From positions 124,001 through 188,000 of the forward strand of contig JAANOX010000055.1 in NCBI GenBank assembly GCA_020184695.1: a stretch of DNA of 64,000 nucleotides. Direction: 5' to 3'. The first letter of the stretch is position 1, and each line of letters opens with the position of its first letter. This document shows, in pieces, positions 16,877-62,847 of the stretch. The notes beneath the pieces are model-generated. The model searched no databases and was not told where the DNA came from. It saw only the letters and a list, made by a program, of their open reading frames with translations. Position numbers and translations under genes: made by a program. The stretch comes from Histomonas meleagridis 2922-C6/04-290x. Its lineage: Eukaryota > Protista > Parabasalia.

Positions 16877-17187
16877 TTATAAACTTAAAAATTCTTCAAT
16901 ATCAATTCCTTCTTGTTCAAGAAGTAATTTAACTGTTTCTGTATGGTTTTTATAACATGTTCTCATAAGTGCTGTATTAAATTATTTGAATAAGTTCCAA
17001 ACATTGTTTTGAAATTCATGATATTAAAAAAAATATTAAATAAAATATATAAATATTTTTAGTATTAATATCAATTCCTTTTTGTTCAAGAAGTAGTTTA
17101 ACTATTTCTATATGATTATTATCAGATGCAAACATAAGTGCTGCGTCAATAAATTTAAATAATATCCATATAAATTTAAATTTCCAT
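16877..17187 (-). other. Spacer-interrupted ankyrin-repeat array B (2 modules, 5' truncated)
   Basis: 17144-17055 AALMFASDNNHIEIVKLLLEQKGIDINTKN; 79-nt spacer; 16975-16877 TALMRTCYKNHTETVKLLLEQEGIDIEEFLSL*. Missed by the ORF track. Confidence 0.85.
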
Positions 17188-17375
17188 AAGTTCGCAACCT
17201 CAAAATATCACAGTACAAGCTCCTCTTAGCACACATAACAATAACACAAGTTTTATTCCAGATCTTGGGAAAAGATCTGGAAATGATCAAAATTATTTTT
17301 CAAGTTCGCAACCTCAAAATATCACAATACAAGCCTCTTAGCACACATAATAATGATAGAAGTTTTATTCCAGAT
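17188..17375 (+). repeat. Imperfect ~75-nt direct repeat, period 114 nt
   Basis: AAGTTCGCAACCTCAAAATATCAC...TTTTATTCCAGAT at 17188-17263 and 17302-17375; encodes SSQPQNIT..LSTHNN..SFIPD. Confidence 0.85.
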
Positions 17376-19116
17376 ATTAATAAATGCATCCTTTCTCAAC
17401 ATCCAAATCTTGCCCAATTTGTGAATCCAAATCCTGTTTCTAATTATGTTTCTTCTAATAAGGAGACAGAAAAAGAGCAAGAGAAGAGAACGGAAATGTT
17501 TGCCCTGCTAAATAGCTTTATAATAAATAATCCTCAGTGTGCAACCGATTTAATACGAGAGTTGATAAATGCATCGACTAACGAATCTACTCTTTCTACA
17601 AAACAGGTAATGATTTACATGGAAAAACTTACTGGAAAGACCTTCGCACAAATAAGAGAGAAGCATAAATTATGTGGTGATTAAGTGGTTGGACGAATAT
17701 TATTGAGAACAGCTTGTGGGAAATATTGGGACAAAAACTTAAAGGGAGGTGGGGAGCCAATCTATTCTGATTCGGATATGAAGAAGTTCATAGATATAGT
17801 TCATGAAAGAGAAAATGATATAAATTGTTTGTCAACATGTGAGGCAATGAAAATATCAACAACTCTCATAAAAGAGAGAGCTGAAAAAGCCAGAAAACTA
17901 TTGGAAATATGCAACTGCAAAAAAATATTTACGAGAGTGAGAGAAACACATTATGATGTAATTTGGTATCAAAAAATGGCTAAAGCAAGAAAATCTAAGT
18001 GTGGATCTTGCTGCTGAATTGGAAACTTTAAGAAGAATTGCTTGTGATTAAGTTGCAATAGAAGACTTTTTTTCCAAGCATTCTCACCTACTAAAGAGGG
18101 ATCCTGCATTAATTTTTAACATGGATGAAACTATGGTTTCATCAAAAGAGAAATATAAGGTATTGGTAACTCAAGGCAAAATCTCACTTACAGAATCATG
18201 TCCAGTATTTCCACACATCATCGCTTGTATATAGGTATCTGCAAGTGGATATGTATGAAACCATTGTTTTACCTAAAGGATAAAAAAATATTAAGTGGGC
18301 TTGAAGAATTCAAAGAACTTGGGCATTTTGCAACATCACCAACAGGTTGGTCCAACAAAAAACTATTTACTTACTGGGCATATACATTCTTAGCTGAAAT
18401 TCAAATTTATAGACTGCAGCTTAAACCAGAACTGAGAAAACAGAGGATTCTATTGCTGGTTGATGGACATTCAAGTAGGTCCGATTATAATGTTGCAAGA
18501 TAATTTGAGATGTTTGGGATTGATATATTAGTATTTCCTGGGCATACTTCTCATTTATTACAGCCTTTTGATGTTGCTATAGCTTCACCATTGAAGACAA
18601 TATATACGAAAAAGTTATTGCAATATGAGCTAAGTTTATTTGGTGGTACTGATAGAACTCAGAGGAATATCAAAGCTATAAGAATTATGATGATAAAATG
18701 TCTGGTATCTGCATTATCAGAAGCTGCTTCAATTGATAATATTCAAAGCGGGTTTAGAGCCTCAGGATTATATCCATTAAATCCAAAAATTTTTTTTATC
18801 TAGTCAATATGAAATGGAGACTTCCTCAAAAATCAAATTTCCTGAATTATATGACAAAATTCAAAATGGAAATTTGGTAAATAATCACCATTTGAATGGA
18901 AGCCTGGTAACCTTGAAATTTGTTTATGATGTAGAAAATAATAGGAGTTTGACGACCATTGACCCAGTTTATTTTCTAGAAAAAATGAAGTGTGATATCA
19001 AATTTTTCTATGCATATACTGAAAAAATGGGGGGAATTTTGACACCTGTTCCAGATCTGATCATAGAAAATACCAATGGAATCAAAAGAATCCACTTGGA
19101 CGAAAAATATTGCTAA
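17188..19116 (+). mobile_element. Decayed pogo/Fot-like (DDE_1, DD35D) transposase
   Basis: LIFNMDET (D at 18124), LLVDGHSSR and VFPGHTSHLLQPFD, with 35 residues between the last two Asp. Several in-frame stops (17682, 18015, 18501, 18801) and frameshifts. No TIRs identified. Confidence 0.8.
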
Positions 19117-20237: not shown

Positions 20238-21869
20238 TTATTCATCGTCATCGTCCTTCTTCTTTTCATCAGGTTTCAGTTTGATCAAATCATCGATTCT
20301 TAATATTGTAATTGCCGCTTCAGTTGCGAATTGTATTGACTTAACCTTTGACATTGCAGGCTCCAAAACTCCGTCCTTGAATCCGTCTCTAATTTTATTC
20401 TCTACCAAATCCAAAGCAGCGAAACATTTTTCGCCATTCTCTTGTGCCTTATAATGTGCTGCCCTTAACTTTGCCACGAGTTCGATTGAATCCAATGCGG
20501 CGTTGTTCGCCAATATCTTTGGTATGACAAGTAATGCCTCAGCGAATTTGAGCATTGCAATTTGTTCTTTTCCTTCATAGTTAGTTGCTGCCTTTGATAA
20601 GTATACTGAAAGTCCGGCTTCGACTGCGCCACCGCCTGATGTTACATGATGTGATTCGATGACTCTTTTGATGGCATTTAATGCATCTCTTAGTGTACGA
20701 TTGGCTTCGTCTAATGTGTATGTGTTAGGGCCACGTAATACAATTGAAGCAGAGTTCTCTGCAGCTGCTTCACGTACTACAATCATTTCATTGTCACCAA
20801 TTGGTACTTGTTCAACACACTTGCAGCGACCAAGCCATGCTGGATCAAATTTGGTGTTTCCTTCGGCATCAACAACTTCTTTAACAATTGTAGCGCCAGT
20901 TGCACGTGCAACCGCGGCAATTTCGCCTTCTGATACATGGCGAATACCAATGATGCCATGGCGAATCATGGGCTTTAGAGATGCCTCGTCAATTGTCTTT
21001 GATGTGATTATGACATTGGCGCCGGCAGAAATGATGGCATCAACAATCTTTCGGCATTGTTCAACTTCTTCATGTTGGATTTGGTTGAGCTTGGAGGCAT
21101 CCTTGAGACGGAATTGAACACCCATTGGAAGACGCGTGCGAGAAAGACTAAAATCAAGAACCGCAATCTTAACATCTTCAACTTTGCGTGGCATGGCTTC
21201 GGCTGAACGTGTGGCATTGATGGCTAAGCCATTGGCAATGAGAGATGACTCAGGAAGTGATTTACCAAGTGATTTGACAATGTTGATCTTGGAAACTGGA
21301 CATTTGTTAGTCTTTCCTTTGACACAAAGACAGGCATCAACAACAATGTTAGCAAAGAAATCAGCATATGCATGAAGAATCTTGGATGACATTGATGTTT
21401 TGGCAACATTGATAAGAATATCACGATCAAGACCTGTGTTGGCAACAGAAAGATTTTTCTTAAGATAAGCAACTGCCATACGGCCTGCACGACGATATCC
21501 TGCAATAACTGTATTTGGATGAACTTTTTGATCAATTAAATCTTGACCAAGACGAAGAAGTTCTGCAGCGAGAAGAACAACTGTTGTTGTTCCATCACCA
21601 ACTTCACGATCTTGGAGTTCAGAAAGTTGAATAAGAACTTTACCTGCTGGATGTTGAACATCAAGATTTTGAAGGATTGTTGCACCATCATTTGTGATTG
21701 TAACTTCACCCATATCATCAACAAGCATCTTATCAAGACCAATTGGACCAAGAGAAGATCGGACAACATTAGCAACTGCTATGGCAGCACGTGTATTTTG
21801 AACACGAACTGTTTCACCTGTTTGTCTTTCTCCATTGAGTTTAAGAGAACCTGGGGAAACTGGTATCAT
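20238..21869 (-). CDS. CCT1: Chaperonin CCT alpha subunit
   Basis: [56 protein letters not shown]; alpha-type N-terminus ([13 protein letters not shown]). Confidence 0.95.
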
Positions 21870-39149: not shown

Positions 39150-42100
39150 AATAGATACTTCAATAATTTTTAATTATTTTTATCATTAGAACAGAATTTT
39201 TATTACGTTTATTATTTACTTACGAAATTATTTATTTATTAATTTGTTTATTTGTTTGTTTCGACAACGATTTGCAAAAATTCACTTTTTGCTGTATTTT
39301 ATTATATTTATGAATTATTGAATTTAATTTGATTTGATTTAATTCCCCTTTTTGACTAAATCGCGATGTTGGGCGATCGCGTTGTGTTTGGCGTGATGAT
39401 GGACGCAATTGCACATTACTTCGCGATGGAGGTCGAAAATCTGTTTGCTGCGCATTCGGACGCATCCCGCGCGGCGTTGTTCCATAGTTTCCGCTGTCGT
39501 TGCCCAGCAGCCCTGCGCCGGGGCCGTAGCGACGCCCAACTTGAACTGACATACGACGCCCGCTGACAGAAACGGAACTTCGCTGCGGTCGAATAAATGC
39601 GCTCGAAATTTGCTGTTGTTGTTGTTGAATTTGTTGTTGTTGTGGCGTTGCATTCGCTGTTTGTTGTTGCGGCGATTGCGATGACGTTTGCGGAGATGAA
39701 AGCGATTCTTGAAGAGGATTATAGCGGCGATTGATTTGAACTGACATCCGGCGCATGCGCGGAGCAGAACTTTTCGGAAGTTGTCGTGCTACTGCATTAA
39801 CATTAGAATTAACATTAACATTAGCATTCGCATTAGTTGTGTTGTCTGAGATTTCGCGATGAACTGTACGAAGTGGCGTTTGGCGATTGCCAATGTTCGG
39901 AAATTCTTCGGGAGCATTATCGTTATCGTTGGAAACATTGTTGCGTCGAATCAGCGTCGAACGTGGCGAAAAGCTGCCGCCGCGCGGACTGAGGCGTTGC
40001 GCAGAAACTGGGCGAAATGCTGGAAAACTTTCAAGATTCGGATCGTCGCCGTTTTGCATATTAACTTCTGAATTAGTATTTAATGGACTTTCACTGTTAT
40101 TATTATTATTCGATGATTCTTCAACAAAATTGCTCTTGAAGCGTGGAAAACTCATTTTGCGACTTCCTGATTCAAATGAAAGACGCGGACGCGCCCCATT
40201 CGTCGGCTGTTCAGTTTCTTTGTTGCTGGGCTCTTCATTCATGTCAATGTCAAGCGGTGGTGGCGCTTTGCCACTGTAATCAGAAATAGTTTTGACACCG
40301 TCCTCACCAATGTAATTAATCGCTGCCATTCGATTCGGTGATAACTTTTCAATAGAAATAGTTGTCGATGAGACATTTTTGATGCTCACTGACTGACTCC
40401 GCTTCTTACGCGTCTTACGATCATGCGCAGCAGTCGATGATTGACGACGCGGACGTGCGGTGGGAGTAAGATCTTCTGAATTAGAACGCGTGCGAGATCC
40501 ATCCGTAGAAAGTGGCTGACGTGACCCAATCGATAATGGGGCAACTGGCGTTTTGGTTTAAGCGGAACATATGTGGCCTTGTGCGAAATGGTCGTGTGAC
40601 AGCAGTTTTTGATTTAAGACATTACTCCATTGATTTTTGTTCAAACATTTGTTCATCTTGTGAATTATTACGATTAATTGTAATACCTTCATTCCAATTA
40701 GATGATAAAAACGCAATGTATAAAACGTATTAAGTGGCTGTTTGCTGTGATATTCAATACCACCATAAACAATAATTTCTTGATTTGATAAAATACCTCC
40801 ACTCGCATATCGAATCGATGGTGGAAAATTACCAATGTCATCAAGATAATGAACTTGAAATGTATTCAAATCAATAATAAATGTAGGAGTTTCTGGAATA
40901 TCTGATTCACCACCAATAATAATCATCGCATTGTTAATTAAAAAAATGATAAATGCGATTTACGCCCAACTAATTTCTCGCGTTCACTGTTCTTTGGTTC
41001 ATTTAACATCTCTTTCTTCCATGTGTTACTTTCAAAGTCATATGACCAAATGTCTAAAATATATCCTTTGGCGCCTTTGCCTCCACAAAAATATACATTT
41101 TATGATTATAAACAACTGCACTGTGATCAAAACGTGATTCTGGTTTAACATTAGAATTGTTAGGAATAACTTCAAAACTTTTATTATTCGGATCTAAGAC
41201 AATTAATTCAGATGAAATACCATTTTGTTTAGATTTACCTCCAAAAAAATATAAAGTTTATCTTTATAATTAACACATGAATGACCATAACGATAAAATT
41301 GTGTACGAATAGAAAATTGATGCCATTTTTGCGTCTGAATGTTATATTGCATAATTTCTGGTGATTCTTTGTTACCAATAAGTCCTCCAATCAAATAAAA
41401 ACTTCCATTTAAATATGAAAATGTATGACGTCGTCGTCCCATAATTCCACTTTCCATGGTAGTCATCTCTGATAATGGATAATCACGTAAAAGTGTTTGA
41501 TGATATGTAGCAAAATCAGAAAATACTAATCGTTGTGATGTAGAAATTCCTCCATTAAATATAATCGATTCACCATTACTAACAGATGCATGTTGACAAA
41601 TAGATGGAATGGAATCAGTAATAGAATTAAGTGTCCAAATAATATATTTGTTCTTCTCATTCTTATTAGAATATTCTTCTAATAAATTTGTAATATGATC
41701 AGTAAATTGTGACTTCTCTTCAAATTTATTAAAAATTAATTCGATATTCAATACGTTCAAATCGATCTTTCTCGCGAATAATAGTTGGAACAATTAATGA
41801 ATGAAAATCTCCAACAATTGGTAAATAATGAAAAATAGAAATATCAGATAATAAAATTAATTTCGCATGTTTAACACGATCAACATAAACAAATATAATA
41901 TCATTACATAAACATAAATATGATGTAACTGTCTTCTTATTATCATATAAACTAATTTCAACATGCATAATAATTTGTCGATTAGGTTCCGCTAAGCGAA
42001 GTCGATATTTCTTTAATTTATCTTGAATCTTCTTCAATACTGATTGTTGACGAACATTATTAGTCGCAATATCTGCTTCTTTATTAATTTTGGTAAATAT

Positions 42101-43248
42101 TTCTTCTGCTATAGGTAATAATATAGAATCTGGATGTGTTTGTGGCGTAATTTTAATTAATTCTTTAATAAATAATAAATAACGTGGAAGCCGTTGAATT
42201 GGTGTAATTAAAAAAGATAAAATCTCACGGCCAGCTGTCATTTGTTGTGATTCAAATAATGTTGATGCAAACGTTCGATTTTTGTTTCTTGTTTTTCTAA
42301 CATTTCATTAATTAATGGATACATAGAAATATAATGAACTGATTTCTCTATTAAACTATAATTCTCTAAAAAAAAGACAGACGTTAATCCACTATATTCT
42401 TCTTTCTCAATAATAGTATATCGATCATAAAATTTGTTTTGATTATCTAAAATTTGTGGAATATCTTTAAATATATTATTATGTTCACTTTCTGTTAATA
42501 AATTTTTGTTCTTCATTTGTTTGGACCAAAAATCATTGATTTGTGTTAAATCATAAAGATATTGTTTCTCTGTTTCTAATATTTCATGAATAAGATTACT
42601 TCGATGTTGAATTTTATTTAACCCATTTTTTCATTAAATTCAACTTCTAAAAAAATTTCTGGATATTCATTAAAATCAAGTTTAAGATGTTCTTCTTTCT
42701 TTTGAACTTTGTTCTTAATAAATACTTGTTTAACATTACCTGAACCATTCAATTGTTCATCAATTCGTTCAATAAATGTTTGTATAGTTAGACTTGAAAG
42801 TTCTGTAACTTTAAATTCAATAATTATTTTAGGAATTTGATGTTTACTATTGTGTTTGATATTTAAATATAAATAAATGGTTTCAGGACTGATTTTATTC
42901 GACTGAAAAAGATAATAATCTGGGCGTCGATATTTACTAGGTTTTTTATCTAACGCTAATTTAGGATAAGTCTTCAATGGAACTTCATGACCTGGCATAG
43001 AAATCATAAAGTTTGGTGTAGATATAAAAAGTGGACTTTCGTTTTGTAAAAAGTCGTGATGTAATACGTCGGACTGATGCTGTCTTAATCTTGGATTCTT
43101 CAATGGTCTTATTAGGACCATTGTCTGTACAAATACAAACATATTTAGCTCCATCCATTTGAAGATAACCTAATGAACGAATAAATTTAATTCAATTTTT
43201 TTGAACATGTTGATCACAAATAAATATTTCAATTTTATTCTATCGTGA
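39150..43248 (-). repeat. Left arm of ~4.1-kb inverted duplication (pairs with 45780-49837)
   Basis: Reverse-complement identity from GTATCTATT (39150/49837) to TCACGATAG (43248/45780). Confidence 0.95.
39339..43158 (-). CDS. RhoGEF (DH-PH) + kelch-repeat protein with low-complexity tail, copy 1 (frameshifted in this consensus)
   Basis: DH motifs EILETEKQYL and TPIQRLPRYLL; kelch GG/HS repeats; R/S/N/Q-rich tail. Split over several ORFs by 1-nt indels. Confidence 0.8.
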
Positions 43249-43371
43249 TCTCAAACAAAAAGTTAAATATCGTGACGGTTTTTATAAAAAGTGAAATGTC
43301 ATATTCGAGTTTTCACAAGATAAAAAAAAATATAAATACAACAAATAAATTTTTTTTACAAACATATTCAA

Positions 43372-45779: not shown

Positions 45780-48700
45780 TCACGATAGAATAAAATTGAA
45801 ATATTTATTTGTGATCAACATGTTCAAAAAAATTGAATTAAATTTATTCGTTCATTAGGTTATCTTCAAATGGATGGAGCTAAATATGTTTGTATTTGTA
45901 CAGACAATGGTCCTAATAAGACCATTGAAGAATCCAAGATTAAGACAGCATCAGTCCGACGTATTACATCACGACTTTTACAAAACGAAAGTCCACTTTT
46001 TATATCTACACCAAACTTTATGATTTCTATGCCAGGTCATGAAGTTCCATTGAAGACTTATCCTAAATTAGCGTTAGATAAAAAACCTAGTAAATATCGA
46101 CGCCCAGATTATTATCTTTTTCAGTCAGAATAAAATCAGTCCTGAAACCATTTTATTTATATTTAAATATCAAACACAATAGTAAACATCAAATTCCTAA
46201 AATAATTATTGAATTTAAAGTTACAGAACTTTCAAGTCTAACTATACAAACATTTATTGAACGAATTGATGAACAATTGAATGGTTCAGGTAATGTTAAA
46301 CAAGTATTTATTAAGAACAAAGTTCAAAAGAAAGAAGAACATCTTAAACTTGATTTTAATGAATATCCAGAAATTTTTTTAGAAGTTGAATTTAATGAAA
46401 ATGGGTTAAATAAAATTCAACATCGAAGTAATCTTATTCATGAAATATTAGAAACAGAGAAACAATATCTTTATGATTTAACACAAATCAATGATTTTTG
46501 GTCCAAACAAATGAAGAACAAAAATTTATTAACAGAAAGTGAACATAATAATATATTTAAAGATATTCCACAAATTTTTAGATAATCAAAACAAATTTTA
46601 TGATCGATATACTATTATTGAGAAAGAAGAATATAGTGGATTAACGTCTGTCTTTTTTTTAGAGAATTATAGTTTAATAGAGAAATCAGTTCATTATATT
46701 TCTATGTATCCATTAATTAATGAAATGTTAGAAAACAAGAAACAAAATCGAACGTTTGCATCAACATTATTTGAATTACAACAAATGACAGATGGCCGTG
46801 ATATTTTATCATTTTTAATTACACCAATTCAACGGCTTCCACGTTATTTATTATTTATTAAAGAATTAATTAAAATTACGCCACAAACACATCCAGATTC
46901 TATATTATTACCTATAGCAGAAGAAATATTTACCAAAATTAATAAAGAAGCAGATATTGCGACTAATAATGTTCGTCAACAATCAGTATTGAAGAAGATT
47001 CAAGATAAATTAAAGAAATATCGACTTCGCTTAGCGGAACCTAATCGACAAATTATTATGCATGTGAAGAAGACAGTTACATCATATTTATGTTTATGTA
47101 ATGATATTATATTTGTTTATGTTGATCGTGTTAAACATGCGAAATTAATTTTATTATCTGATATTTCTATTTTTCATTATTTACCAATTGTTGGAGATTT
47201 TCATTCATTAATTGTTCCAACTATTATTCGCGAGAAAGATCGATTTGAACGTATTGAATATCGAATTAATTTTAATAAATTTGAAGAGAAGTCACAATTT
47301 ACTGATCATATTACAAATTTATTAGAAGAATATTCTAATAAGAATGAGAAGAACAAATATATTATTTGGACACTTAATTCTATTACTGATTCCATTCCAT
47401 CTATTTGTCAACATGCATCTGTTAGTAATGGTGAATCGATTATATTTAATGGAGGAATTTCTACATCACAACGATTAGTATTTTCTGATTTTGCTACATA
47501 TCATCAAACACTTTTACGTGATTATCCATTATCAGAGATGACTACCATGGAAAGTGGAATTATGGGACGACGACGTCATACATTTTCATATTTAAATGGA
47601 AGTTTTTATTTGATTGGAGGACTTATTGGTAACAAAGAATCACCAGAAATTATGCAATATAACATTCAGACGCAAAAATGGCATCAATTTTCTATTCGTA
47701 CACAATTTTATCGTTATGGTCATTCATGTGTTAATTATAAAGATAAACTTTATATTTTTGGAGGTAAATCTAAACAAAATGGTATTTCATCTGAATTAAT
47801 TGTCTTAGATCCGAATAATAAAAGTTTTGAAGTTATTCCTAACAATTCTAATGTTAAACCAGAATCACGTTTTGATCACAGTGCAGTTGTTTATAATCAT
47901 AAAATGTATATTTTTGGAGGCAAAGGCGCCAAAGGATATATTTTAGACATTTGGTCATATGACTTTGAAAGTAACACATGGAAGAAAGAGATGTTAAATG
48001 AACCAAAGAACAGTGAACGCGAGAAATTAGTTGGGCGTAAATCGCATTTATCATTTTTAATTAACAATGCGATGATTATTATTGGTGGTGAATCAGATAT
48101 TCCAGAAACTCCTACATTTATTATTGATTTGAATACATTTCAAGTTCATTATCTTGATGACATTGGTAATTTTCCACCATCGATTCGATATGCGAGTGGA
48201 GGTATTTTATCAAATCAAGAAATTATTGTTTATGGTGGTATTGAATATCACAGCAAACAGCCACTTAATACGTTTTATACATTACGTTTATCATCTAATT
48301 GGAATGAAGGTATTACAATTAATCGTAATAATTCACAAGATGAACAAATGTTTGAACAAAATCAATGGAGTAATGTCTTAAATCAAAACTGCTGTCACAC
48401 GACCATTTCGCACAAGGCCACATATGTTCCGCTTAAATCCAAAACGCCAGTTGCCCCATTATCGATTGGGTCACGTCAGCCACTTTCTACGGATGGATCT
48501 CGCACGCGTTCTAATTCAGAAGATCTTACTCCCACCGCACGTCCGCGTCGTCAATCATCGACTGCTGCGCATGATCGTAAGACGCGTAAGAAGCGGAGTC
48601 AGTCAGTGAGCATCAAAAATGTCTCATCGACAACTATTTCTATTGAAAAGTTATCACCGAATCGAATGGCAGCGATTAATTACATTGGTGAGGACGGTGT

Positions 48701-49837
48701 CAAAACTATTTCTGATTACAGTGGCAAAGCGCCACCACCGCTTGACATTGACATGAATGAAAGAGCCCAGCAACAAAGAAACTGAACAGCCGACGAATGG
48801 GGCGCGTCCGCGTCTTTCATTTGAATCAGGAAGTCGCAAAATGAGTTTTCCACGCTTCAAGAGCAATTTTGTTGAAGAATCATCGAATAATAATAATAAC
48901 AGTGAAAGTCCATTAAATACTAATTCAGAAGTTAATATGCAAAACGGCGACGATCCGAATCTTGAAAGTTTTTCCAGCATTTCGCCCCGAGTTTCTGCGC
49001 AACGCCTCAGTCCGCGCGGCGGCAGCTTTTCGCCACGTTCGACGCTGATTCGACGCAACAATGTTTCCAACGATAACGATAATGCTCCCGAAGAATTTCC
49101 GAACATTGGCAATCGCCAAACGCCACTTCGTACAGTTCATCGCGAAATCTCAGACAACACAACTAATGCGAATGCTAATGTTAATGTTAATTCTAATGTT
49201 AATGCGGTAGCGACAACTTCCGAAAAAGTTCTGCTCCGCGCATGCGCCGGATGTCAGTTCAAATCAATCGCCGCTATAATCCTCTTCAAGAATCGCTTTC
49301 ATCTCCGCAAACGTCATCGCAATCGCCGCAACAACAAACAGCGAATGCAACGCCACAACAACAACAAATTCAACAACAACAACAGCAAATTTCGAGCGCA
49401 TTTATTCGACCGCAGCGAAGTTCCGTTTCTGTCAGCGGGCGTCGTATGTCAGTTCAAGTTGGGCGTCGCTACGGCCCCGGCGCAGGGCTGCTGGGCAACG
49501 ACAGCGGAAACTATGGAACAACGCCGCGCGGGATGCGTCCGAATGCGCAGCAAACAGATTTTCGACCTCCATCGCGAAGTAATGTGCAATTGCGTCCATC
49601 ATCACGCCAAACACAACGCGATCGCCCAACATCGCGATTTAGTCAAAAGGGGAATTAAATCAAATCAAATTAAATTCAATAATTCATAAATATAATAAAA
49701 TACAGCAAAAAGTGAATTTTTGCAAATCGTTGTCGAAACAAACAAATAAACAAATTAATAAATAAATAATTTCGTAAGTAAATAATAAACGTAATAAAAA
49801 TTCTGTTCTAATGATAAAAATTATTGAAGTATCTATT
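45780..49837 (+). repeat. Right arm of inverted duplication
   Basis: See left arm; differs by a few substitutions, a 21-nt in-frame deletion and 1-nt indels. Confidence 0.95.
45870..49658 (+). CDS. RhoGEF (DH-PH) + kelch-repeat protein, copy 2 (frameshifted in this consensus)
   Basis: ORFs 45870-46133, 46277-46585, 46539-48785, 48757-49689 and 49242-49658 join into ~1260 aa; terminal TAAA at 49656. Confidence 0.8.
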
Positions 49838-51780: not shown

Positions 51781-53166
51781 CTAATCATCTAAATATAATC
51801 TCGAAAGTAGTTCTTCTACTTCTATTAAGAACTGTTTTTTACTATCCTTTCCAACGATTGATTCCCTAATTTCTGCCAACATTTCGATAAGTTCTTGTGT
51901 GTTAACATCACTAAACAACGGATTATCAGTCAGCGGTCCCTCAATCATCCGCAAGAGCAAAAACAAAGCATGCACAACTTTCGAAAATATTTTCGATTTG
52001 GAAACAACGAAATATTCGGTGATCTTGGCCATGAGCGAGTTCGCCACGAAGAAGTTCAAAATCGCTGGTTCCTGAATGTAACCCAAAATTCCGCACAAAA
52101 ACAATACGACTGTTTCTTTTGTTGAAAATGTTCCTACGTTAAAGAAACGTATTGCAATGTCACCAAATCCACGGCACAATACTTCTTGAATAACTTCAGG
52201 CCCAAGGGAAAACATATTAGTTAAAGATTCAAGAATCAAACCCATGCACTTTTCGTTAATGTTTTGAAAAATTGAAATTTTTTGAATGAAGCCGCGAACG
52301 AACAATTCTTGCGTCGATTCCGAAGTACCAGCTGAAACATTAATAAATACGCCAAGGATATGTTCTTTGTCAATTTGACGGACATTCGGTAATTTAGAAA
52401 GAAGAAAATCATCAACATTTTGCCCAAAGAAAAAAGTATAGACTCCATCAGTATATAAAGTTTCAAGTATGATTTTGAATAAATAAACAACTTTAGAAAA
52501 TACTTCATCGTTCGGGGAAAAAAGATACATTGGAATAATTGCACGAAATGTAAGTTCATTATATGTGGTATCATTGGTGATTAAGATAAATTGGGTTACA
52601 ATATTGATTAGTTGAAGAAGATGTGCAGGATTAATATCGGGTCTTTGAATAAGGGCTAAAATAGATTGGAAGTATTTTTCATTTTGAGATTTGTCATTGA
52701 GAATATCCATAATTTGATAACTAGAAACAAGGAAATTAGTAACAGCTCTTTCTTCATTTATTGTCATCGGTTGAAATAATTTTTGAGCTAAAAAAAGACC
52801 AGCTTCGCTATCAACAATTTCAATTCCTAAATTTACACGAGATTGAAGAATATACCCAACTAAAAGGAAGGCTTTTTCTGATATAATTGATCCGCTAGGA
52901 AATTTATTTGCTATTAAAATAAAGATTTCCAATTGTTGATGAAAAAAATTGACATTTCCAAAGGCTATTTCAAAAAGCCTATCTAAAGCTTTGGTTATGT
53001 CTTGTTCATTGCCGTTTTGAAGTACTAAACATAATTGTTTTATTTCTTGGTAAATTTTAGGTTTTTGTTTTATTGTAAAATTGTAGTTTAAAGATTCGCC
53101 ACGAGCTTCTTGGTGTTGCTTTGTCTTGAAAAAGGGATTTACTTTAGTATTCTCTATCATCTGCAC
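51781..53166 (-). CDS. ARM/helical-repeat protein (importin-alpha-like fold, uncharacterised)
   Basis: Helical repeats such as ILGVFINVSAGTSE, ILESLTNMFSLGPE, GTFSTKETVV. Start uncertain (GTG 53166 or ATG 53160). Confidence 0.6.
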   Translation of the reverse strand: MQMIENTKVNPFFKTKQHQEARGESLNYNFTIKQKPKIYQEIKQLCLVLQNGNEQDITKALDRLFEIAFGNVNFFHQQLEIFILIANKFPSGSIISEKAFLLVGYILQSRVNLGIEIVDSEAGLFLAQKLFQPMTINEERAVTNFLVSSYQIMDILNDKSQNEKYFQSILALIQRPDINPAHLLQLINIVTQFILITNDTTYNELTFRAIIPMYLFSPNDEVFSKVVYLFKIILETLYTDGVYTFFFGQNVDDFLLSKLPNVRQIDKEHILGVFINVSAGTSESTQELFVRGFIQKISIFQNINEKCMGLILESLTNMFSLGPEVIQEVLCRGFGDIAIRFFNVGTFSTKETVVLFLCGILGYIQEPAILNFFVANSLMAKITEYFVVSKSKIFSKVVHALFLLLRMIEGPLTDNPLFSDVNTQELIEMLAEIRESIVGKDSKKQFLIEVEELLSRLYLDD

Positions 53167-53694: not shown

Positions 53695-54739
53695 TTATTT
53701 TCGTTGTTTTGTATATTTATTTAACAGACGAGCAATTTCATCATTGGATGCAAGTGTAAATGCTGTGTTAAATAAATTAAATAATTTCCAAGTTCTAAAA
53801 GCAAAACCAATTTTATTTTAATAAATACTATATAAAACAAAGAAATATCTTGAGCATTAATATCATTTTCTTTATGCGTGAGAAGCAGTTTCACAATTTC
53901 TACATAACCCTTATAGGATGCAATCATAAGTGCTGTTTTAAATAATTAAAATAAATTCTAATCGAAAAGAATAAATTAAAAAACATTAAAGTAATCCTCA
54001 ACTTATATAAACGATTCCAAAATTTTAAAAATAAACAGTGAATTGTTAAATTAAATTTCAAACGATGAAAACAAATCACAAATTATTGAAACAAAAAACA
54101 AATTTATAAAACCAACAAAAAATAAATCATGTAAATGCTTTGCATATTGACTTCAATTCCTTTATGTTTAAGAAGGAATTGAACAATTTCAACGTAACCT
54201 TTTGAAGATGCGTAATATAGTGATGTTTTAATGAGTTGAAATAAAATCCGATTTAACAAATTAAATTTTAAATTTTGTAAATAAATGTTAAATAAGATAA
54301 ATAAAAATTATAATGATTAATGTCAATTCCTTCTTGTTCAAGAAGTAATTTAACAATTTCGATGTGACCTTTTTCATATGCAATCATAAGTGCTGTTTTA
54401 AATATTTTAAATGATTTCCAGATAATATTTTGAAATCCAAAATTTTTTAATTAATTTTCAAATATTACAAATAAATATCCTTAGTATTAGTATCAATTAC
54501 TTTTTGTTCAAGAAGTAATTTAACTATTGCTGTATTACCTTTTTCTGAAGAAGCAATAAGCGCTGTATAAAATTCTTAGTATAAAATCCAAATGAAATAA
54601 TGAAATATGAAATTATTTATATGAATTTTATATAAGAAAAATAACCTTTAGCATTAACATTAATTCCTTCTTGTTCAAGAATTAGTTTAACTATGTTTAT
54701 ATATCCTTTTTCAGATGCAAAAATAAGTGCTGTTTCAAA
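53695..54739 (-). other. Spacer-interrupted ankyrin-repeat array A (5 full modules + C-cap, 5' truncated)
   Basis: 90-nt modules at 54733-54644, 54566-54477, 54396-54307, 54226-54137 and 53936-53847; terminal module TAFTLASNDEIARLLNKYTKQRK* at 53766-53695 with TAAA. Spacers of 77, 80, 80, 200 and 80 nt. Confidence 0.9.
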
Positions 54740-54770
54740 TCAAACAAATAAATTTTATCTTCAGTATTAA

Positions 54771-57077
54771 CTCCTTTATATTCAACAAGTAATTACTGCA
54801 GATGAAGAATTTCAACAATGGGTACTTAGCACGCAATCGATTGATGAACTTCAATTATTAGATGATGATTTAAATGCTGAAGAAGATGAAGATGAAGATG
54901 AAAGTTATTATGAATCATTAAGTTATTCATTTTCTTGTGAATGTGATTTAATTAAATTAAATGATGTTTATAAAGGTAAATTCTATATTAATGATAAAGA
55001 ATTATTCTTTGAAGGTCGAACAGAAGAAAATAATGTTAAATCGATTCAAGTTTCATTAAAATCTTTATCAATGGTATTACATCGGAATTATTTACATTTG
55101 CCAAAAGCATTAGAATTCTTTTTGATTAAAAGGAAAAGTTATTTCATAGTATTCCCAAGTAATGAAAAAAGAAAAGAAGTATTACGATTTCTACAAAAGA
55201 AGAAATTAAATAATCTTAAAGTATTACAATTAAGCTCAAACATATCCACTATTTGGAATGAGCTTAAATTAACTGAAAAATGGCAAAATGGAATAATAAC
55301 AAATTATGAATATTTAATATATGTTAATTTATTTGCAGGTCGAAGTTTTAATGATTTAACACAATATCCAATATTCCCATGGATATTAAATGATTATACA
55401 AGTGAAACAATTGATATTAATGATCCAAAGAATTATCGTGACTTAAATAAACCAATTGGTGCAATTAATGAAACACGATTAAATAACTTAATTAAAATAT
55501 CAAATGAAGCATTTGAAGATCCTAAGAAATCATATTTATATCGTATACATTATTCTACTTCATATTTTGTATCATATTATTTATTACGTTTAGAACCATT
55601 TACTACAATTAATATCAAAATGCAAGATAATAAATTTGATAATTCACAACGAATATTTTCATCAATACAAAAGGTTTGGGAATGTGTATCATCACCAGTT
55701 GTTAATGACTTTCGAGAATTAATTCCAGAATTCTTTACTACACCCGAATTCTTAATTAATTCGAATGGATTCGATTTAGGTAAAGATATTAATGACAACA
55801 TAATTAATGATGTAATATTACCGAAATGGGCTAAAACGCCATATGAATTCATTGAAATACATAAGAACGCATTAGAATCAAATTATGTTAACAACAATTT
55901 AAATGGTTGGATCGATTTAATATTCGGATATAAACAACAAGGTAAAGCAGCCATCGAAGCAAATAATACTTTTCCGCCATTCTCTTATGCTTCGTGTATA
56001 ACTAAATCAGTATTAAATGACCCGGAAATGTTATCACAATGTCAACAAAACGCTTTTCATTTCGGTATTACACCAAAACAAATATTTACTTCGCCACATC
56101 CAAAGCGTCAAAACGTTGTACAAATTCATAACTTTTATAACTTACGAGAGAAAGTTAAACTTACGCAAATATTAAAGACACAATTCCGTAACATATTTAT
56201 GCGAAATGATCAAACGAATTTAATACTTATTAATATTAAAGGGTTATTAACAATGATCAATTATAACAACGCAAATAATACAACAAATAATAATAACAAT
56301 AATAACATCGAAGAAGATTTAACTCGTTATATCGGTAGTATTGAAGAGTTTAGTGAAAAGAAATTCTCTTGTTTAATGGGATCGAACATATTAATCGCTT
56401 CTTCGAACACTGATTCTTCTTTCCATTTGTTCCAAATCGAAAATAATTCGATAAAACATATCGAAATGAAAAACCAATTCTCATTAAACATCGCAGTATG
56501 TCAACCTGATAACTATCATTTGATTACTGCTTCAACAGATTCTTCAATCATTTTATGGCATTTGGGTGTGCCAACTTCAATTGTATATCGAATTTCACCA
56601 CATTCAGAACCGATAATTGACGTGAAAGCAAATTTGCAATTGAACATGATTGTAAGTTGTGATAAATCGAAAACTATTGTTGTTTCGGAATTGTCACAAG
56701 GAGCTTTCATTAGATCAATTTCAATACCTTCGAATATACTGAAAATTGAAATAAGTACAAACCCTTGCATACTAGTGGCGTACGAAGGTGTCAAAGATAA
56801 AACGTCTTTAATTTCGACATTTAATATAAACGGCAAAAAAGTGGCAACGGTGGAAATTATGGGTAAAAATTTGTCGTGGTGCGAAATGAAAATTAATAAC
56901 TTGAAATCTTTGTTGGCTGTCGGCGATCAACAAAATAAATTAAAGATATTCGAGTTGCCAACATTAAAATTAATCGCGGATATTGAAATGATGTCACAGA
57001 TTACAACGATGTGTTATAATACAAGAAATAATAAGTTGTACTGTGCATGTGAAAATAATATTGTTTATTCTCTTTAG
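54771..57077 (+). CDS. BEACH-domain protein (PH-BEACH-WD40), 5' truncated
   Basis: TNYEYLIYVNLFAGRSFNDLTQYPIFPW, DFRELIPEFF, WIDLIFGYKQQG. The frame stays open without ATG from 54771 (TAA at 54768) through an acidic stretch and the PH start to ATG 55071. Confidence 0.85.
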   Translation, partial: LLYIQQVITADEEFQQWVLSTQSIDELQLLDDDLNAEEDEDEDESYYESLSYSFSCECDLIKLNDVYKGKFYINDKELFFEGRTEENNVKSIQVSLKSLSMVLHRNYLHLPKALEFFLIKRKSYFIVFPSNEKRKEVLRFLQKKKLNNLKVLQLSSNISTIWNELKLTEKWQNGIITNYEYLIYVNLFAGRSFNDLTQYPIFPWILNDYTSETIDINDPKNYRDLNKPIGAINETRLNNLIKISNEAFEDPKKSYLYRIHYSTSYFVSYYLLRLEPFTTINIKMQDNKFDNSQRIFSSIQKVWECVSSPVVNDFRELIPEFFTTPEFLINSNGFDLGKDINDNIINDVILPKWAKTPYEFIEIHKNALESNYVNNNLNGWIDLIFGYKQQGKAAIEANNTFPPFSYASCITKSVLNDPEMLSQCQQNAFHFGITPKQIFTSPHPKRQNVVQIHNFYNLREKVKLTQILKTQFRNIFMRNDQTNLILINIKGLLTMINYNNANNTTNNNNNNNIEEDLTRYIGSIEEFSEKKFSCLMGSNILIASSNTDSSFHLFQIENNSIKHIEMKNQFSLNIAVCQPDNYHLITASTDSSIILWHLGVPTSIVYRISPHSEPIIDVKANLQLNMIVSCDKSKTIVVSELSQGAFIRSISIPSNILKIEISTNPCILVAYEGVKDKTSLISTFNINGKKVATVEIMGKNLSWCEMKINNLKSLLAVGDQQNKLKIFELPTLKLIADIEMMSQITTMCYNTRNNKLYCACENNIVYSL

Positions 57078-57235: not shown

Positions 57236-58386
57236 ATGGGGTGCGGCCAATCGAAGGTTGTACCAGAACAAATATCACCTTTACCACCTTGCAAAACATC
57301 AGTAAAAGATCATGCACAGCAAAACATACAGCCAAAGGAGGAAGAGCCAATAAAAAATGAGGAACCTAAAGAAATAACATCCAATACAAACAATGAAAAA
57401 CAGCCGATTCTAATCAAAGATAATGATATAGAAGCATTTGGATTGATTCTTTGTGGAACTGGAGAAACGGGTAAAACAACATATGCTCGTCAATTAAAGC
57501 TTAAATATGTTGGAATTGAGGATGATGAAAGAAAGAGCCTTATCCCAACCATAAAAGGAAATCTCGTTGAATCTATGCAACTTCTTCTTATTTGGTTAGA
57601 ACGTAATTCGATGGAAATCAGTCCAGATCTCGAACAAGCAGCACAAGATATTCTTGCATTAAATCCGTTTGCTTGCGATTTTACTCCTCAACTTGCTGAA
57701 TCTCTACAACAACTATGGCAAGATCCATCAATACAAACGGCATACAGACATAAAGATGAAACTATCATTCCAGACAACGTCGGTTACTTCTTTGACAAAA
57801 TTGATGATCTCCAAGATGAAGACTACGTTCCAAGTGATGATGATGTCCTTCGAGTTCGTGTCAGATCAATTGGAATTGATTCAATCACATTTGATCTCGA
57901 TGGAGCAATCATCCGTATATATATGACGTTGGTGGTCAAAAGAATGAACGCAGCAAATGGGAAAAAATCATGAGTGAAGTTGGCGGATGTATATATTTTG
58001 TATCATTGGCCGAATTCGACAAGCCAATGTTCGAAGACATCCAAATGGTTCGCATCAATGATTCGCTTGAAGTTTTCTCCCAAGTTGTCAAAAAAGAAGA
58101 GTTTAGAGAAGCACCAATTTTCCTCATCTGCAATAAGTTCGATGAATTCACAGAAAAGATAAGGGAAACGGATTGCTTCACTAAGGTGTTTCCTGAGTAT
58201 ATCGGAGATCCACACGACCCTGACAAATGTGCACAGTATATTGTCGATAAATTCTTGGAAAGGGCTAAACCACTTACCGAGTCAAGGCCAATTATTGTTT
58301 ACAGGCAAGTGTCATTAGATAGTCAGCAGGTGATTGATAACACACTCCAAATGTTCAAATATATCAGCCAAAATTACTACGAGTAA
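57236..58386 (+). CDS. Heterotrimeric G-protein alpha subunit (2-nt frameshift in this consensus)
   Basis: MGCGQS lipidation motif, GTGETGKTT, RVRSIGI, CNKFD. Removing one AT from ATATATAT (57917-57924) restores YDVGGQKNERSKW and joins the two ORFs. Confidence 0.92.
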
Positions 58387-61851: not shown

Positions 61852-62847
61852 TCAAGAACAAATTTCCATACCTTCATCTTCTAAAAAAAATAATATTTCT
61901 AAGTTATTGGACTGAATACATTTAATTCCTAAATCAGTTAAATTTATAAATTTTTTTCTCATTTCATAAAAATAATGAAAAATATCATTTCGATGATATT
62001 CAATTGCTGTCTCATTCACTAAATCAAAAAATGAATCATTTTGTTCACATAAATGAATAATTTCTAAATTTCCTCCTGCAATTGCATAACGAAATGTTTT
62101 GTAAAGCTTTGCATCATTTAATAACAAATATTTAAAACATTGAACTGATCCAAAATATGCTGAATAATTAATTAATGTTGGATTACTAAATAGTAACGAA
62201 GATTTTTCATAAATACATGGTTTAATTCTTTGATTAAAATTAAAATTTGCTTGTGATGCTATTTGTTGTAGTTTATCAACATCATCATTTCTAATAAATG
62301 TTGCAATTGCCATTGGATTAACTCCTTCTTTAATGTAACTTTTATGAAATTTCAAATCAAGTTGGTAAAGTGTATCAACATATTTTCCAAATTTTTTTAT
62401 ATCTTTATCAGAAATATTTAATATTTCTTCTTTTGTTTTATAATGTGAAAAATAAGGTTTTGTTAAGTTCTTTTGAAAATGTGCAATAATGAGTTTTTGT
62501 GCAATCATCTTTCCAATTAAATAATATGATTCTCTTGTTTTTAATTCAAGAAGAAGCTTACAGAAGCATGATATTATTTTTGGATTGTTTATATTTATTT
62601 CTTCTTCTGAGTTTTCGATTAACTTCAAATATGTAAGATATAAAATTGAGTTAGCCTGTCGAATTATAAATGCTGAATATATATATCTGCAGAGAAGAAG
62701 ATTGAATGAATAAGGAAAATTTTCTATTTCTGAAAACAAATCCATTGTTTCTTTAACAATAGGTTTAATGTTACTTTTATTTAATGAAAAAACATTTGCT
62801 TCTAATGATAGCATAAATTTTTTCCAATCAAATGTTTTTTGGTTCAT
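61852..62847 (-). CDS. DUF3447/ankyrin-associated protein, probably prematurely truncated
   Basis: IRNDDVDKLQ, PTLINYSAYFGSVQCFKYLLLN, YAIAGGNLEIIHLCEQ, AIEYHRNDIF. Confidence 0.8.
   Translation of the reverse strand: MNQKTFDWKKFMLSLEANVFSLNKSNIKPIVKETMDLFSEIENFPYSFNLLLCRYIYSAFIIRQANSILYLTYLKLIENSEEEININNPKIISCFCKLLLELKTRESYYLIGKMIAQKLIIAHFQKNLTKPYFSHYKTKEEILNISDKDIKKFGKYVDTLYQLDLKFHKSYIKEGVNPMAIATFIRNDDVDKLQQIASQANFNFNQRIKPCIYEKSSLLFSNPTLINYSAYFGSVQCFKYLLLNDAKLYKTFRYAIAGGNLEIIHLCEQNDSFFDLVNETAIEYHRNDIFHYFYEMRKKFINLTDLGIKCIQSNNLEILFFLEDEGMEICS

Follow-up and report, generated by a model that had tools for sequence, protein, structure and literature searches.

Ultrashort spliceosomal introns measure 15-16 nt in Stentor, 18-21 nt in the nucleomorph of Bigelowiella and 23-25 nt in Trichomonas (type B). 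They are very short, AT- or T-rich and nearly fixed in length, like the units of the Histomonas ankyrin genes described here, and they are precisely removed from the mRNA, as the units would be. A further common trait is conservation at the 5′ side and of an A located close to the 3′ end; in the Histomonas unit these are an octamer and an A three positions ahead of the U-rich 3′ end. However, ultrashort introns are of the GT-AG type, with a (A/T)CTAAC branch motif in those of trichomonads, whereas the Histomonas units lack CTAAC. The former are placed singly between normal exons, whereas the latter are arranged in tandem with exons of 3 nt. Animal and plant microexons (3-27 nt) can be, like the codons kept in Histomonas, as short as one codon, and they also add residues to the surface loops of proteins. 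They depend, on the other hand, on long canonical flanking introns and dedicated splicing enhancers and are not known to occur at the 20-nt pitch of the Histomonas codons.

The non-canonical introns of euglenids and Amoebophrya are longer and solitary, and depend on pairing of their ends or on inverted or direct repeats. Like the Histomonas inserts, they interrupt nuclear protein-coding genes and have no GT-AG borders; the inserts, in contrast, have no shared fold and no flanking repeats. The bulge-helix-bulge introns of tRNA and archaeal genes, together with the HAC1/XBP1 mRNA, are examples of spliceosome-independent excision of short RNA segments (14-26 nt), mRNA included. Such endonuclease-ligase splicing requires a defined helix-bulge or stem-loop at both cut sites and comprises one event per RNA, whereas the Histomonas units are about 89% A+T and have no common structure. 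The internal eliminated sequences of ciliates are cut from the DNA, are bounded by TA and have at least 26 bp in Paramecium. They are short and AT-rich, interrupt coding sequences and are precisely removed, with a weak end consensus, as the Histomonas inserts seem to be, but the borders of the latter are not TA and the spacer sequence is retained in DNA runs. Finally, in translational bypassing (gene 60 of phage T4 and the mitochondrial byps of Magnusiomyces) the inserts remain in the mRNA. These inserts also break the frame within a coding sequence and are not represented in the protein; the Histomonas RNA contigs, unlike bypass mRNAs, do not contain the inserts.

The sizes cited for ultrashort introns are 15 nt in Stentor, 18 nt in Bigelowiella and 23 nt in Trichomonas, and a recent revision of the Trichomonas introns contains GT-AG introns only, of 23-196 nt (PMC12316389). 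The genome of Histomonas meleagridis (Palmieri et al.) has 43 Mb and 28% GC and is described as intron-poor, no gene having more than a single intron (PMC8529796). The genome paper (PMC8529796) makes no mention of ankyrin genes or inserts, and our literature search found no description of comparable inserts. The window analysed here is the whole stretch of 64,000 nt of contig JAANOX010000055.1. It fits the published description of the genome, with 20-40% GC and long uninterrupted ORFs, and its genes include those for BspA-type LRR, BEACH, G-alpha, kinase-Ras and RhoGEF-Kelch proteins. Positions 20241-21869 contain the gene for the CCT chaperonin, which is identical in assembly GCA_020186115.1, contig WSYJ01000125.1 (WSYJ00000000, Histomonas meleagridis, PMC8529796).

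The ankyrin array is placed on the minus strand. The original prediction of five 30-codon ankyrin modules and a C-terminal cap with a stop codon, within 53695-54739, was found to be correct. The lengths given for the spacers S1 to S5 (77, 80, 80, 200 and 80 nt), each of the form 3n+2, are also right, and therefore each module is in a +2 shift relative to the preceding one. The view of the spacers as single units of about 80 nt did not hold, as they have a sub-period of 20 nt, and an upstream module remnant and a further spacer of 20 nt (S0) had been missed. The features, in the direction of reading, are the following:

54778..54794, minus strand: candidate extra 17-nt insert AATTACTTGTTGAATAT, uncertain; the motif alone is frequent in AT-rich DNA
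54754..54792, minus strand: upstream ankyrin-module remnant, LLVEYKGVNTEDK, which reads KGVNTEDK without the candidate insert
54734..54753, minus strand: spacer S0, one unit of 20 nt, with insert ATTTATTTGTTTGATTT (54753-54737) and kept codon GAA (54736-54734)
54644..54733, minus strand: module M0, TALIFASEKGYINIVKLILEQEGINVNAK(G)
54567..54646, minus strand: spacer S1, four units if insert 1 begins at GGT (54646); kept codons AAA CAT GGA TAT (KHGY)
54477..54566, minus strand: module M1, TALIASSEKGNTAIVKLLLEQKVIDTNTKD
54397..54476, minus strand: spacer S2, four units; kept codons GAA TGG GGA AAA (EWGK)
54307..54396, minus strand: module M2, TALMIAYEKGHIEIVKLLLEQEGIDINHYN
54227..54306, minus strand: spacer S3, four units; kept codons AAC AAA GGA AAA (NKGK)
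54137..54226, minus strand: module M3, TSLYYASSKGYVEIVQFLLKHKGIEVNMQS
53937..54136, minus strand: spacer S4, 200 nt, ten units; kept codons reading FVVETWELRK
53847..53936, minus strand: module M4, TALMIASYKGYVEIVKLLLTHKENDINAQD
53767..53846, minus strand: spacer S5, four units; kept codons AGT TGG GGA AAC (SWGN)
53698-53766, minus strand: C-terminal cap M5, TAFTLASNDEIARLLNKYTKQRK, followed by the stop codon TAA (53697-53695)

S1 measures 80 nt when its first insert is taken to begin at GGT and 77 nt otherwise. TRF detects a period of 170 nt in the array, which had been likened to a nucleosome repeat and is merely the sum of a 90-nt module and an 80-nt spacer. No ATG was found upstream of M0 at this locus. 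The array adjoins the BEACH ORF, which is placed on the plus strand, is open from 54771 and itself lacks an N-terminus. Removal of the candidate insert 54794-54778, whose leave-one-out motif score of 6.8 is in the upper half, allows the upstream frame ...PLLKFFICS to run into KGVNTEDK.

Each spacer resolves into n × 20 nt, and the unit is formed by a 17-nt insert followed by one kept codon. The numbers of units from S0 to S5 are 1, 4, 4, 4, 10 and 4. The 27 inserts have the consensus ATTTATTTnnAnnATTT, in which the units begin with ATTTAT and finish with TTT; T3 is present in 27/27, A14 in 23/27 and T17 in 25/27. Their GC content is 11%, compared with 35% in the kept triplets (Fisher p = 4e-7), and these triplets are diverse and include no stop codon (0 in 27). 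The lag-20 autocorrelation of S4 is 0.56, a value matched by none of 5000 shuffles, and more peaks are seen at lags 40 and 60. When the kept triplet was placed in each of the 20 possible phases, only offset 17 yielded GC-rich, varied and stop-free codons. The kept triplets of S0 to S5 then read E; KHGY; EWGK; NKGK; FVVETWELRK; SWGN.

In all five four-unit spacers (the second locus, described below, is counted) GGA is the third codon, two before Thr, which is the place of the Gly of the ankyrin hairpin. The 'TGGA 24 nt before Thr' of the original prediction was thus well positioned, but it actually corresponds to the Gly codon GGA followed by an insert, one codon and then Thr. A scan of the window with a 17-nt matrix was too weak alone, as about 5 chance matches per kb per strand are expected. 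Since the motif is so frequent in AT-rich sequence, some further factor must restrict the reaction. In the other long ORFs of the window no frame-restoring inserts of 17 nt were seen, with no excess of this length compared with lengths of 14-23 nt, and a metagenome scan for the pattern Gly-insert-codon-Thr-Ala-Leu retrieved no match.

A second locus of the window has the same build:

16877..17187, minus strand: ATG, insert, GGA, insert, GAC, module, spacer, second module, stop

Its first module occupies 17144-17055. The spacer has 79 nt, one of its inserts being of 16 nt, and the kept codons AAT GAA GGA AAT read NEGN.

The modules themselves behave as coding sequence. The variation at codon position 2 is about half of that at positions 1 and 3, and in a neutral simulation, in which the consensus module received as many changes as were observed, only 1.3% of the runs left the six modules free of stops. 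The pN/pS between modules is about 0.65, which indicates only a mild constraint and is ordinary for repeats with varying surface residues. If the modules are under selection, then the spacers must be removed. The claim that they are removed, drawn from the conservation of the modules, is supported by the simulation and by RNA contigs without spacer sequence.

The ankyrin repeat has a period of 33-34 residues with a Gly-x-Thr-(Ala/Pro)-Leu hairpin, and this arrangement is obtained only after unit-wise removal of the inserts, which yields 30+4 residues with G-K/N/Y-T-A-L. Transcripts of paralogs, which are abundant and overlap the modules, show ...IN-AKD-NNGK-TAL and ...NYGR-TAL in the loose-end consensus of contigs. 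The same 30+4 period is present in uninterrupted metagenomic homologues with Pfam Ank domains, for example ...IDINIQD-DYGR-TALM. A set of 112 uninterrupted homologues, with identities up to about 60%, was used as a yardstick. Against it, 24 conceptual proteins were scored by phmmer, as the mean over the top 20 matches: those with the triplet at each of 20 offsets, with no loop, with the 2+2 codons of the original prediction, and with the first four or the last four codons of the spacer. Offset 17 was the best of the 24 loop models, with a mean of 75.0 bits (top 20) and a best match of 100.1 bits. The 2+2-codon model came next (mean 68.0 bits, best match 86.9) and is therefore inferior to one codon per unit, and the model without a loop reached a mean of 58.2 bits (top 20 of the 112 homologues).

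Ordinary introns are an inadequate description of the spacers, as had been anticipated. The intron options enumerated were GT-AG, GC-AG and AT-AC, both frame-restoring and without a stop. No unit ends in AG (0/27) and only 2/27 start with GT; AG is absent throughout S2 and S3, and no frame-restoring GT-AG intron is present in S2-S4. Only S1 permits a frame-restoring and stop-free GT-AG intron, GT...ACTAAG...CAG. A scan for ACTAACACACAG with up to 2 mismatches found no match in the locus; the reported lack of ACTAAC is thus correct, though S1 contains one ACTAAG, the sole resemblance. The termini of the units rule out the known trichomonad signals, and ordinary GT-AG/ACTAAC introns were rejected on the missing AG, the missing frame-restoring options and the missing 3′ motif. 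AT-AC introns were rejected as well: the pairs are those expected by chance in AT-rich DNA, and the removal of the whole S5 conflicts with the contig break points given below. The units also lack the U12-type features (5′ ATATCC, 3′ AC and the TCCTTAAC branch site).

The folding of four spacers with their flanks, which the original prediction had proposed, revealed no common structure (z-scores -0.07, -1.89, +0.26 and -3.77). The ends of a unit cannot pair together because both are T-rich in the consensus. No conserved helix-bulge or stem-loop of the bulge-helix-bulge or IRE1 type is present at the cut sites, and a search of the whole window against Rfam found one tRNA only and nothing in the spacers. 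Reverse-transcriptase jumps between units were considered and rejected, as they would remove multiples of 20 nt and not of 17.

The transcript evidence comes from four runs of one 2023 study (X1-X4), available as assembled contigs and not as reads, which were taken as RNA by guess. They fit RNA because the depth is zero across the intergenic segment 53252-53445 in all four and neighbouring genes differ strongly in depth. Assembled contigs lose rare forms. Contig 20 of run X3 has 254 nt and a depth of 25.7, and aligns in two blocks, 54269-54137 and 53939-53846. The first block has no mismatch and stops exactly at the final base of M3, whereas the second consists of AAA and M4; between them are 27 letters that are placed on neither flank. 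By count and by alignment ends, this contig fits nine plus one kept codons with 10 × 17 = 170 nt missing. The model predicts that the 27 letters after M3 would be TTTGTTGTGGAAACTTGGGAGTTAAGA, followed by AAA and M4. As 27 letters are fewer than the 31-letter word of the assembler, single reads must link M3 to M4. The idea of one intervening sequence of about 80 nt per repeat is not supported by this result, since 30 nt of S4 remain in the contig, as expected after ten 17-nt excisions and not after the loss of one intron. A contig of X2 over 54705-54945 has no mismatch either and lacks exactly 17 reference letters, a deficit that falls either in S0 or at 54794-54778.

The ends and branches of the contigs coincide with predicted insert borders at 54269, 53769/53770 and 53846. 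The X3 contig end at 54269 is the border between insert 2 of S3 and its codon. Position 53769/53770 is the border between the last S5 insert and its codon, and breaks occur there and at 53846 in 4/4 RNA runs. Three runs have an unspliced S5 contig of 136 nt (53740-53875), and its overlap of 30 nt with either side is that expected of an assembly bubble. Unspliced contigs coexist with the others at depths of 2.5-10.8; those of S4 are of low depth (3.6 in X1 and 2.5 in X4). The proportion of S4 words present is 1.00 in the DNA runs X6 and X7 (2021), 1.00 in X1, 0.82 in X4 and 0.00 in X3. S4 is thus real DNA, as the DNA runs have all its words, yet it is gone from the RNA assembly with the best expression (X3).

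The same X3 contig retains inserts 3 and 4 of S3. In leave-one-out motif scoring of 28 inserts these two have the second and third lowest scores, and insert 2 of S3 has the highest; the probability that the retained inserts are the second and third weakest of the 28 by chance is about 0.008. The retained inserts being weak motifs and the border insert the strongest, the motif appears to be tied to removal. The retention of the two inserts also implies that the transcripts of the array copy are often out of frame. The RNA contigs of three runs depart from the genome exactly at 54795 and continue for 700-1100 letters that could not be placed. This break could correspond to a further insert at 54794-54778 or to the edge of a duplicated segment. 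The array copy, with no ATG upstream of M0 and two weak inserts kept in RNA, may be a decaying member of the family.

Taken with the loop fit, these contigs make it probable that the inserts are removed at the RNA level, unit by unit, and the loops of single codons and 17-nt inserts point to a so far undescribed kind of intervening sequence. In the gene, the codons of the loop between ankyrin repeats would stand singly in a row, each behind an AT-rich sequence of 16-17 nt with the consensus AUUUAUUU-nn-A-nn-AUUU. These sequences would be cut from the transcript one unit per step and the ends joined, which would leave 1, 4 or 10 loop codons and restore the ankyrin period of 30+4 residues. The unit would be defined by its own motif, with AUUU at 1, 5 and 14 and nearly invariant T3, A14 and T17, and by its fixed length. 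The exon context, the terminal dinucleotides and RNA folding would have no apparent part in its recognition. The arrays may grow when the 20-nt unit is duplicated in tandem, with the gain of one loop residue, and also when the 170-nt repeat of module and spacer is duplicated. Peptides spanning the loops, such as VIDTNTKDEWGK and GIDINHYNNK, would be expected from the insert-free product. Several points weigh against this explanation: the transcript data are contigs, unspliced ones among them, the motif has a low information content, the other long ORFs of the window show no such inserts, and the array copy lacks an ATG upstream of M0 and is only mildly constrained.

Four other explanations have to be weighed against removal from the RNA. 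An improbable one sees in the array an ankyrin pseudogene in decay, with a 20-nt AT-rich tandem repeat that has spread over its loops, and regards the spacer-free RNA contigs as artefacts of assembly or library or as derived from paralogs. The missing start codon, the adjoining BEACH ORF without its N-terminus, the low expression, the two units kept in RNA, the pN/pS of 0.65 and the tandem repeat called by TRF all agree with a dead gene. However, the variation of the spacers is not that of a plain minisatellite, as it is concentrated in one GC-richer and stop-free triplet that matches the ankyrin loop. A dead gene leaves unexplained the presence of GGA and of Lys/Asn codons at the correct loop positions in every spacer, as well as the best homologue fit at offset 17. 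The deficits are of exactly 17 nt and 10 × 17 nt, in contigs that otherwise have 0 mismatches, unique parts of the spacers included. With k = 31 and 27 letters between the flanks, the linkage of M3 to M4 must lie within single reads.

Removal at the level of DNA would involve the transcription of insert-free copies or alleles, which programmed excision or gene conversion with cDNA as donor could produce. The contigs alone fit a deletion in RNA or in DNA alike, the samples differ (spacer words are present in X1 and X4, with none in X3), and the RNA strain carries fixed substitutions relative to the reference. On the other hand, all of the S4 words (100%) are carried by both DNA runs, X6 and X7, which are not DNA of the RNA-seq samples. 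Two S3 units are still present in the very contig that lacks all ten of S4, a state that resembles incomplete processing more than a clean allele. The inserts also have neither the TA borders nor the flanking repeats of ciliate eliminated sequences, and we know of no germline/soma separation in parabasalids. This origin of the insert-free contigs is considered quite unlikely.

It is very unlikely that each spacer is a single non-canonical intron of about 65-77 nt with an incidental 20-nt periodicity. The 3n+2 length and conserved ends of every spacer, the GT...ACTAAG...CAG of S1 and the S5 break points, which taken alone also fit a 77-nt removal leaving one codon, are compatible with it. However, the S4 RNA contig keeps 30 nt, with 27 of them contiguous with neither flank. 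The removal of the whole S5 as an AT-AC intron predicts breaks at 53767/53766, whereas four runs show them at 53770/53769. Such introns would also deprive the repeats of the hairpin Gly, and the corresponding model scores worse against the homologues. Translational recoding, one of the options of the original prediction, in which the mRNA would keep the spacers and the ribosomes hop across them, is hardly credible and also unnecessary: although unspliced contigs exist, the RNA itself is without the inserts (the main X3 contig lacks all ten of S4), 4-10 consecutive gaps per loop would make the hopping extremely inefficient, and the spacers share neither codons for take-off or landing nor structures.

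Under the preferred explanation, the unit-by-unit excision from RNA, more than one kind of reaction can be envisaged, and we know of no machinery for such an excision. The cutting may tentatively be attributed to a divergent reaction of the spliceosome type, with A14 as the branch point. An endonuclease-plus-ligase route that measures between two AUUU sites appears unlikely. The broader proposal of a dedicated non-spliceosomal system for excision and ligation, which would measure 17 nt between AUUU sites and generate diversity of loop length, is doubtful. In such a system the 20-nt unit would duplicate easily, and the loops of the ankyrin binding surface would thereby gain or lose single codons.

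If confirmed, the units would count among the shortest of all known intervening sequences. To our knowledge, they would also be the first that have neither canonical termini nor a structure that defines them, and the first case of single-codon exons at a fixed pitch of 20 nt. The finding would challenge the current view of the minimum features that an excision machinery needs in its substrate, and would provide a system for intron evolution in which the birth of units through duplication in tandem can be seen (1, 4 or 10 units). The published annotation permits at most one intron per gene (PMC8529796) and would therefore, if the explanation is true, have overlooked this whole class of ankyrin genes or called them wrongly. 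Should the machinery be other than the spliceosome, the excision would represent a new kind of RNA processing. A non-spliceosomal system, if true, would act as a generator of loop-length diversity in a large family of surface and effector-type proteins of this parasite.

The ankyrin array is surrounded by genes and repeated segments with irregularities of their own, as follows.

39300-43250 and 45780-49660: arms of a near-perfect inverted duplication (~3.9 kb, 98-100% identical)
46539-48785, + strand: RhoGEF-Kelch ORF
48757-49689, + strand: ORF after the RhoGEF-Kelch ORF
51781-53166, - strand: 461-aa ORF
54771-57077, + strand: PH-BEACH-WD40 ORF, N-terminal region absent
57236-58386, + strand: G-alpha gene, as two ORFs
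61852-62847, - strand: 331-aa ORF, with a degenerate C-terminal region that is ankyrin-like, of a different type

The PH-BEACH-WD40 ORF adjoins the array, and its earliest in-frame ATG falls within the PH domain. Contigs from three of the four sequencing runs (X1-X4, taken to be RNA and known as assembled contigs) diverge from the genome at 54795, leaving 700-1100 letters unplaced, and carry four fixed differences over the ORF (55709, 56273, 56534 and 56835). One possibility is that the ORF is a truncated copy of a full-length paralog; another is that it marks the border of a rearrangement. Over the 461-aa ORF the RNA contigs contain eight differences within 40 nt (52861-52898), and the match is lost at ~52942-52947 in X1, X3 and X4. 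One X2 contig ends its match at 52858, and another X2 contig has the same differences. A separate contig of low depth continues colinear with the genome.

The two ORFs of the G-alpha gene are divided by a +2 frame shift within a (TA)n run (~57916-57924), immediately 5' of the DVGGQ motif; either an indel of the assembly or a genuine frameshift could account for it. Between the BEACH and G-alpha genes, one X1 contig has 15 extra T after 57114. The RhoGEF-Kelch ORF and the next ORF overlap at 48757-48785 in different frames, in what looks like another single-indel break. The arms of the inverted duplication contain RhoGEF-Kelch gene copies and flank a centre of 2.5 kb with a VPS9-domain ORF; the duplication could be a true palindrome or a long-read foldback artefact.

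Within the array, S1, the spacer between modules M0 and M1, is the only spacer to combine a GT at the module end with ACTAAG and a CAG 12 nt beyond (54563-54645, -). This is an alternative of canonical look, the use of which would remove the loop and the Thr codon.

No 20-nt unit structure (17-nt insert plus one kept codon) was seen downstream of the 331-aa ORF. Directly upstream of the second ankyrin locus lies a direct repeat of ~75 nt with a period of ~113 nt (17190-17390; aagttcgcaacctcaaaatatcaca...ttttattccagat), which is not AT-rich. The locus itself starts (17145-17187, -) with ATG, an insert, GGA, a second insert and GAC, followed by the first module of the locus, and both inserts match the motif only to a moderate degree. 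If this arrangement is true, the start codon of the second locus too would be a one-codon exon.
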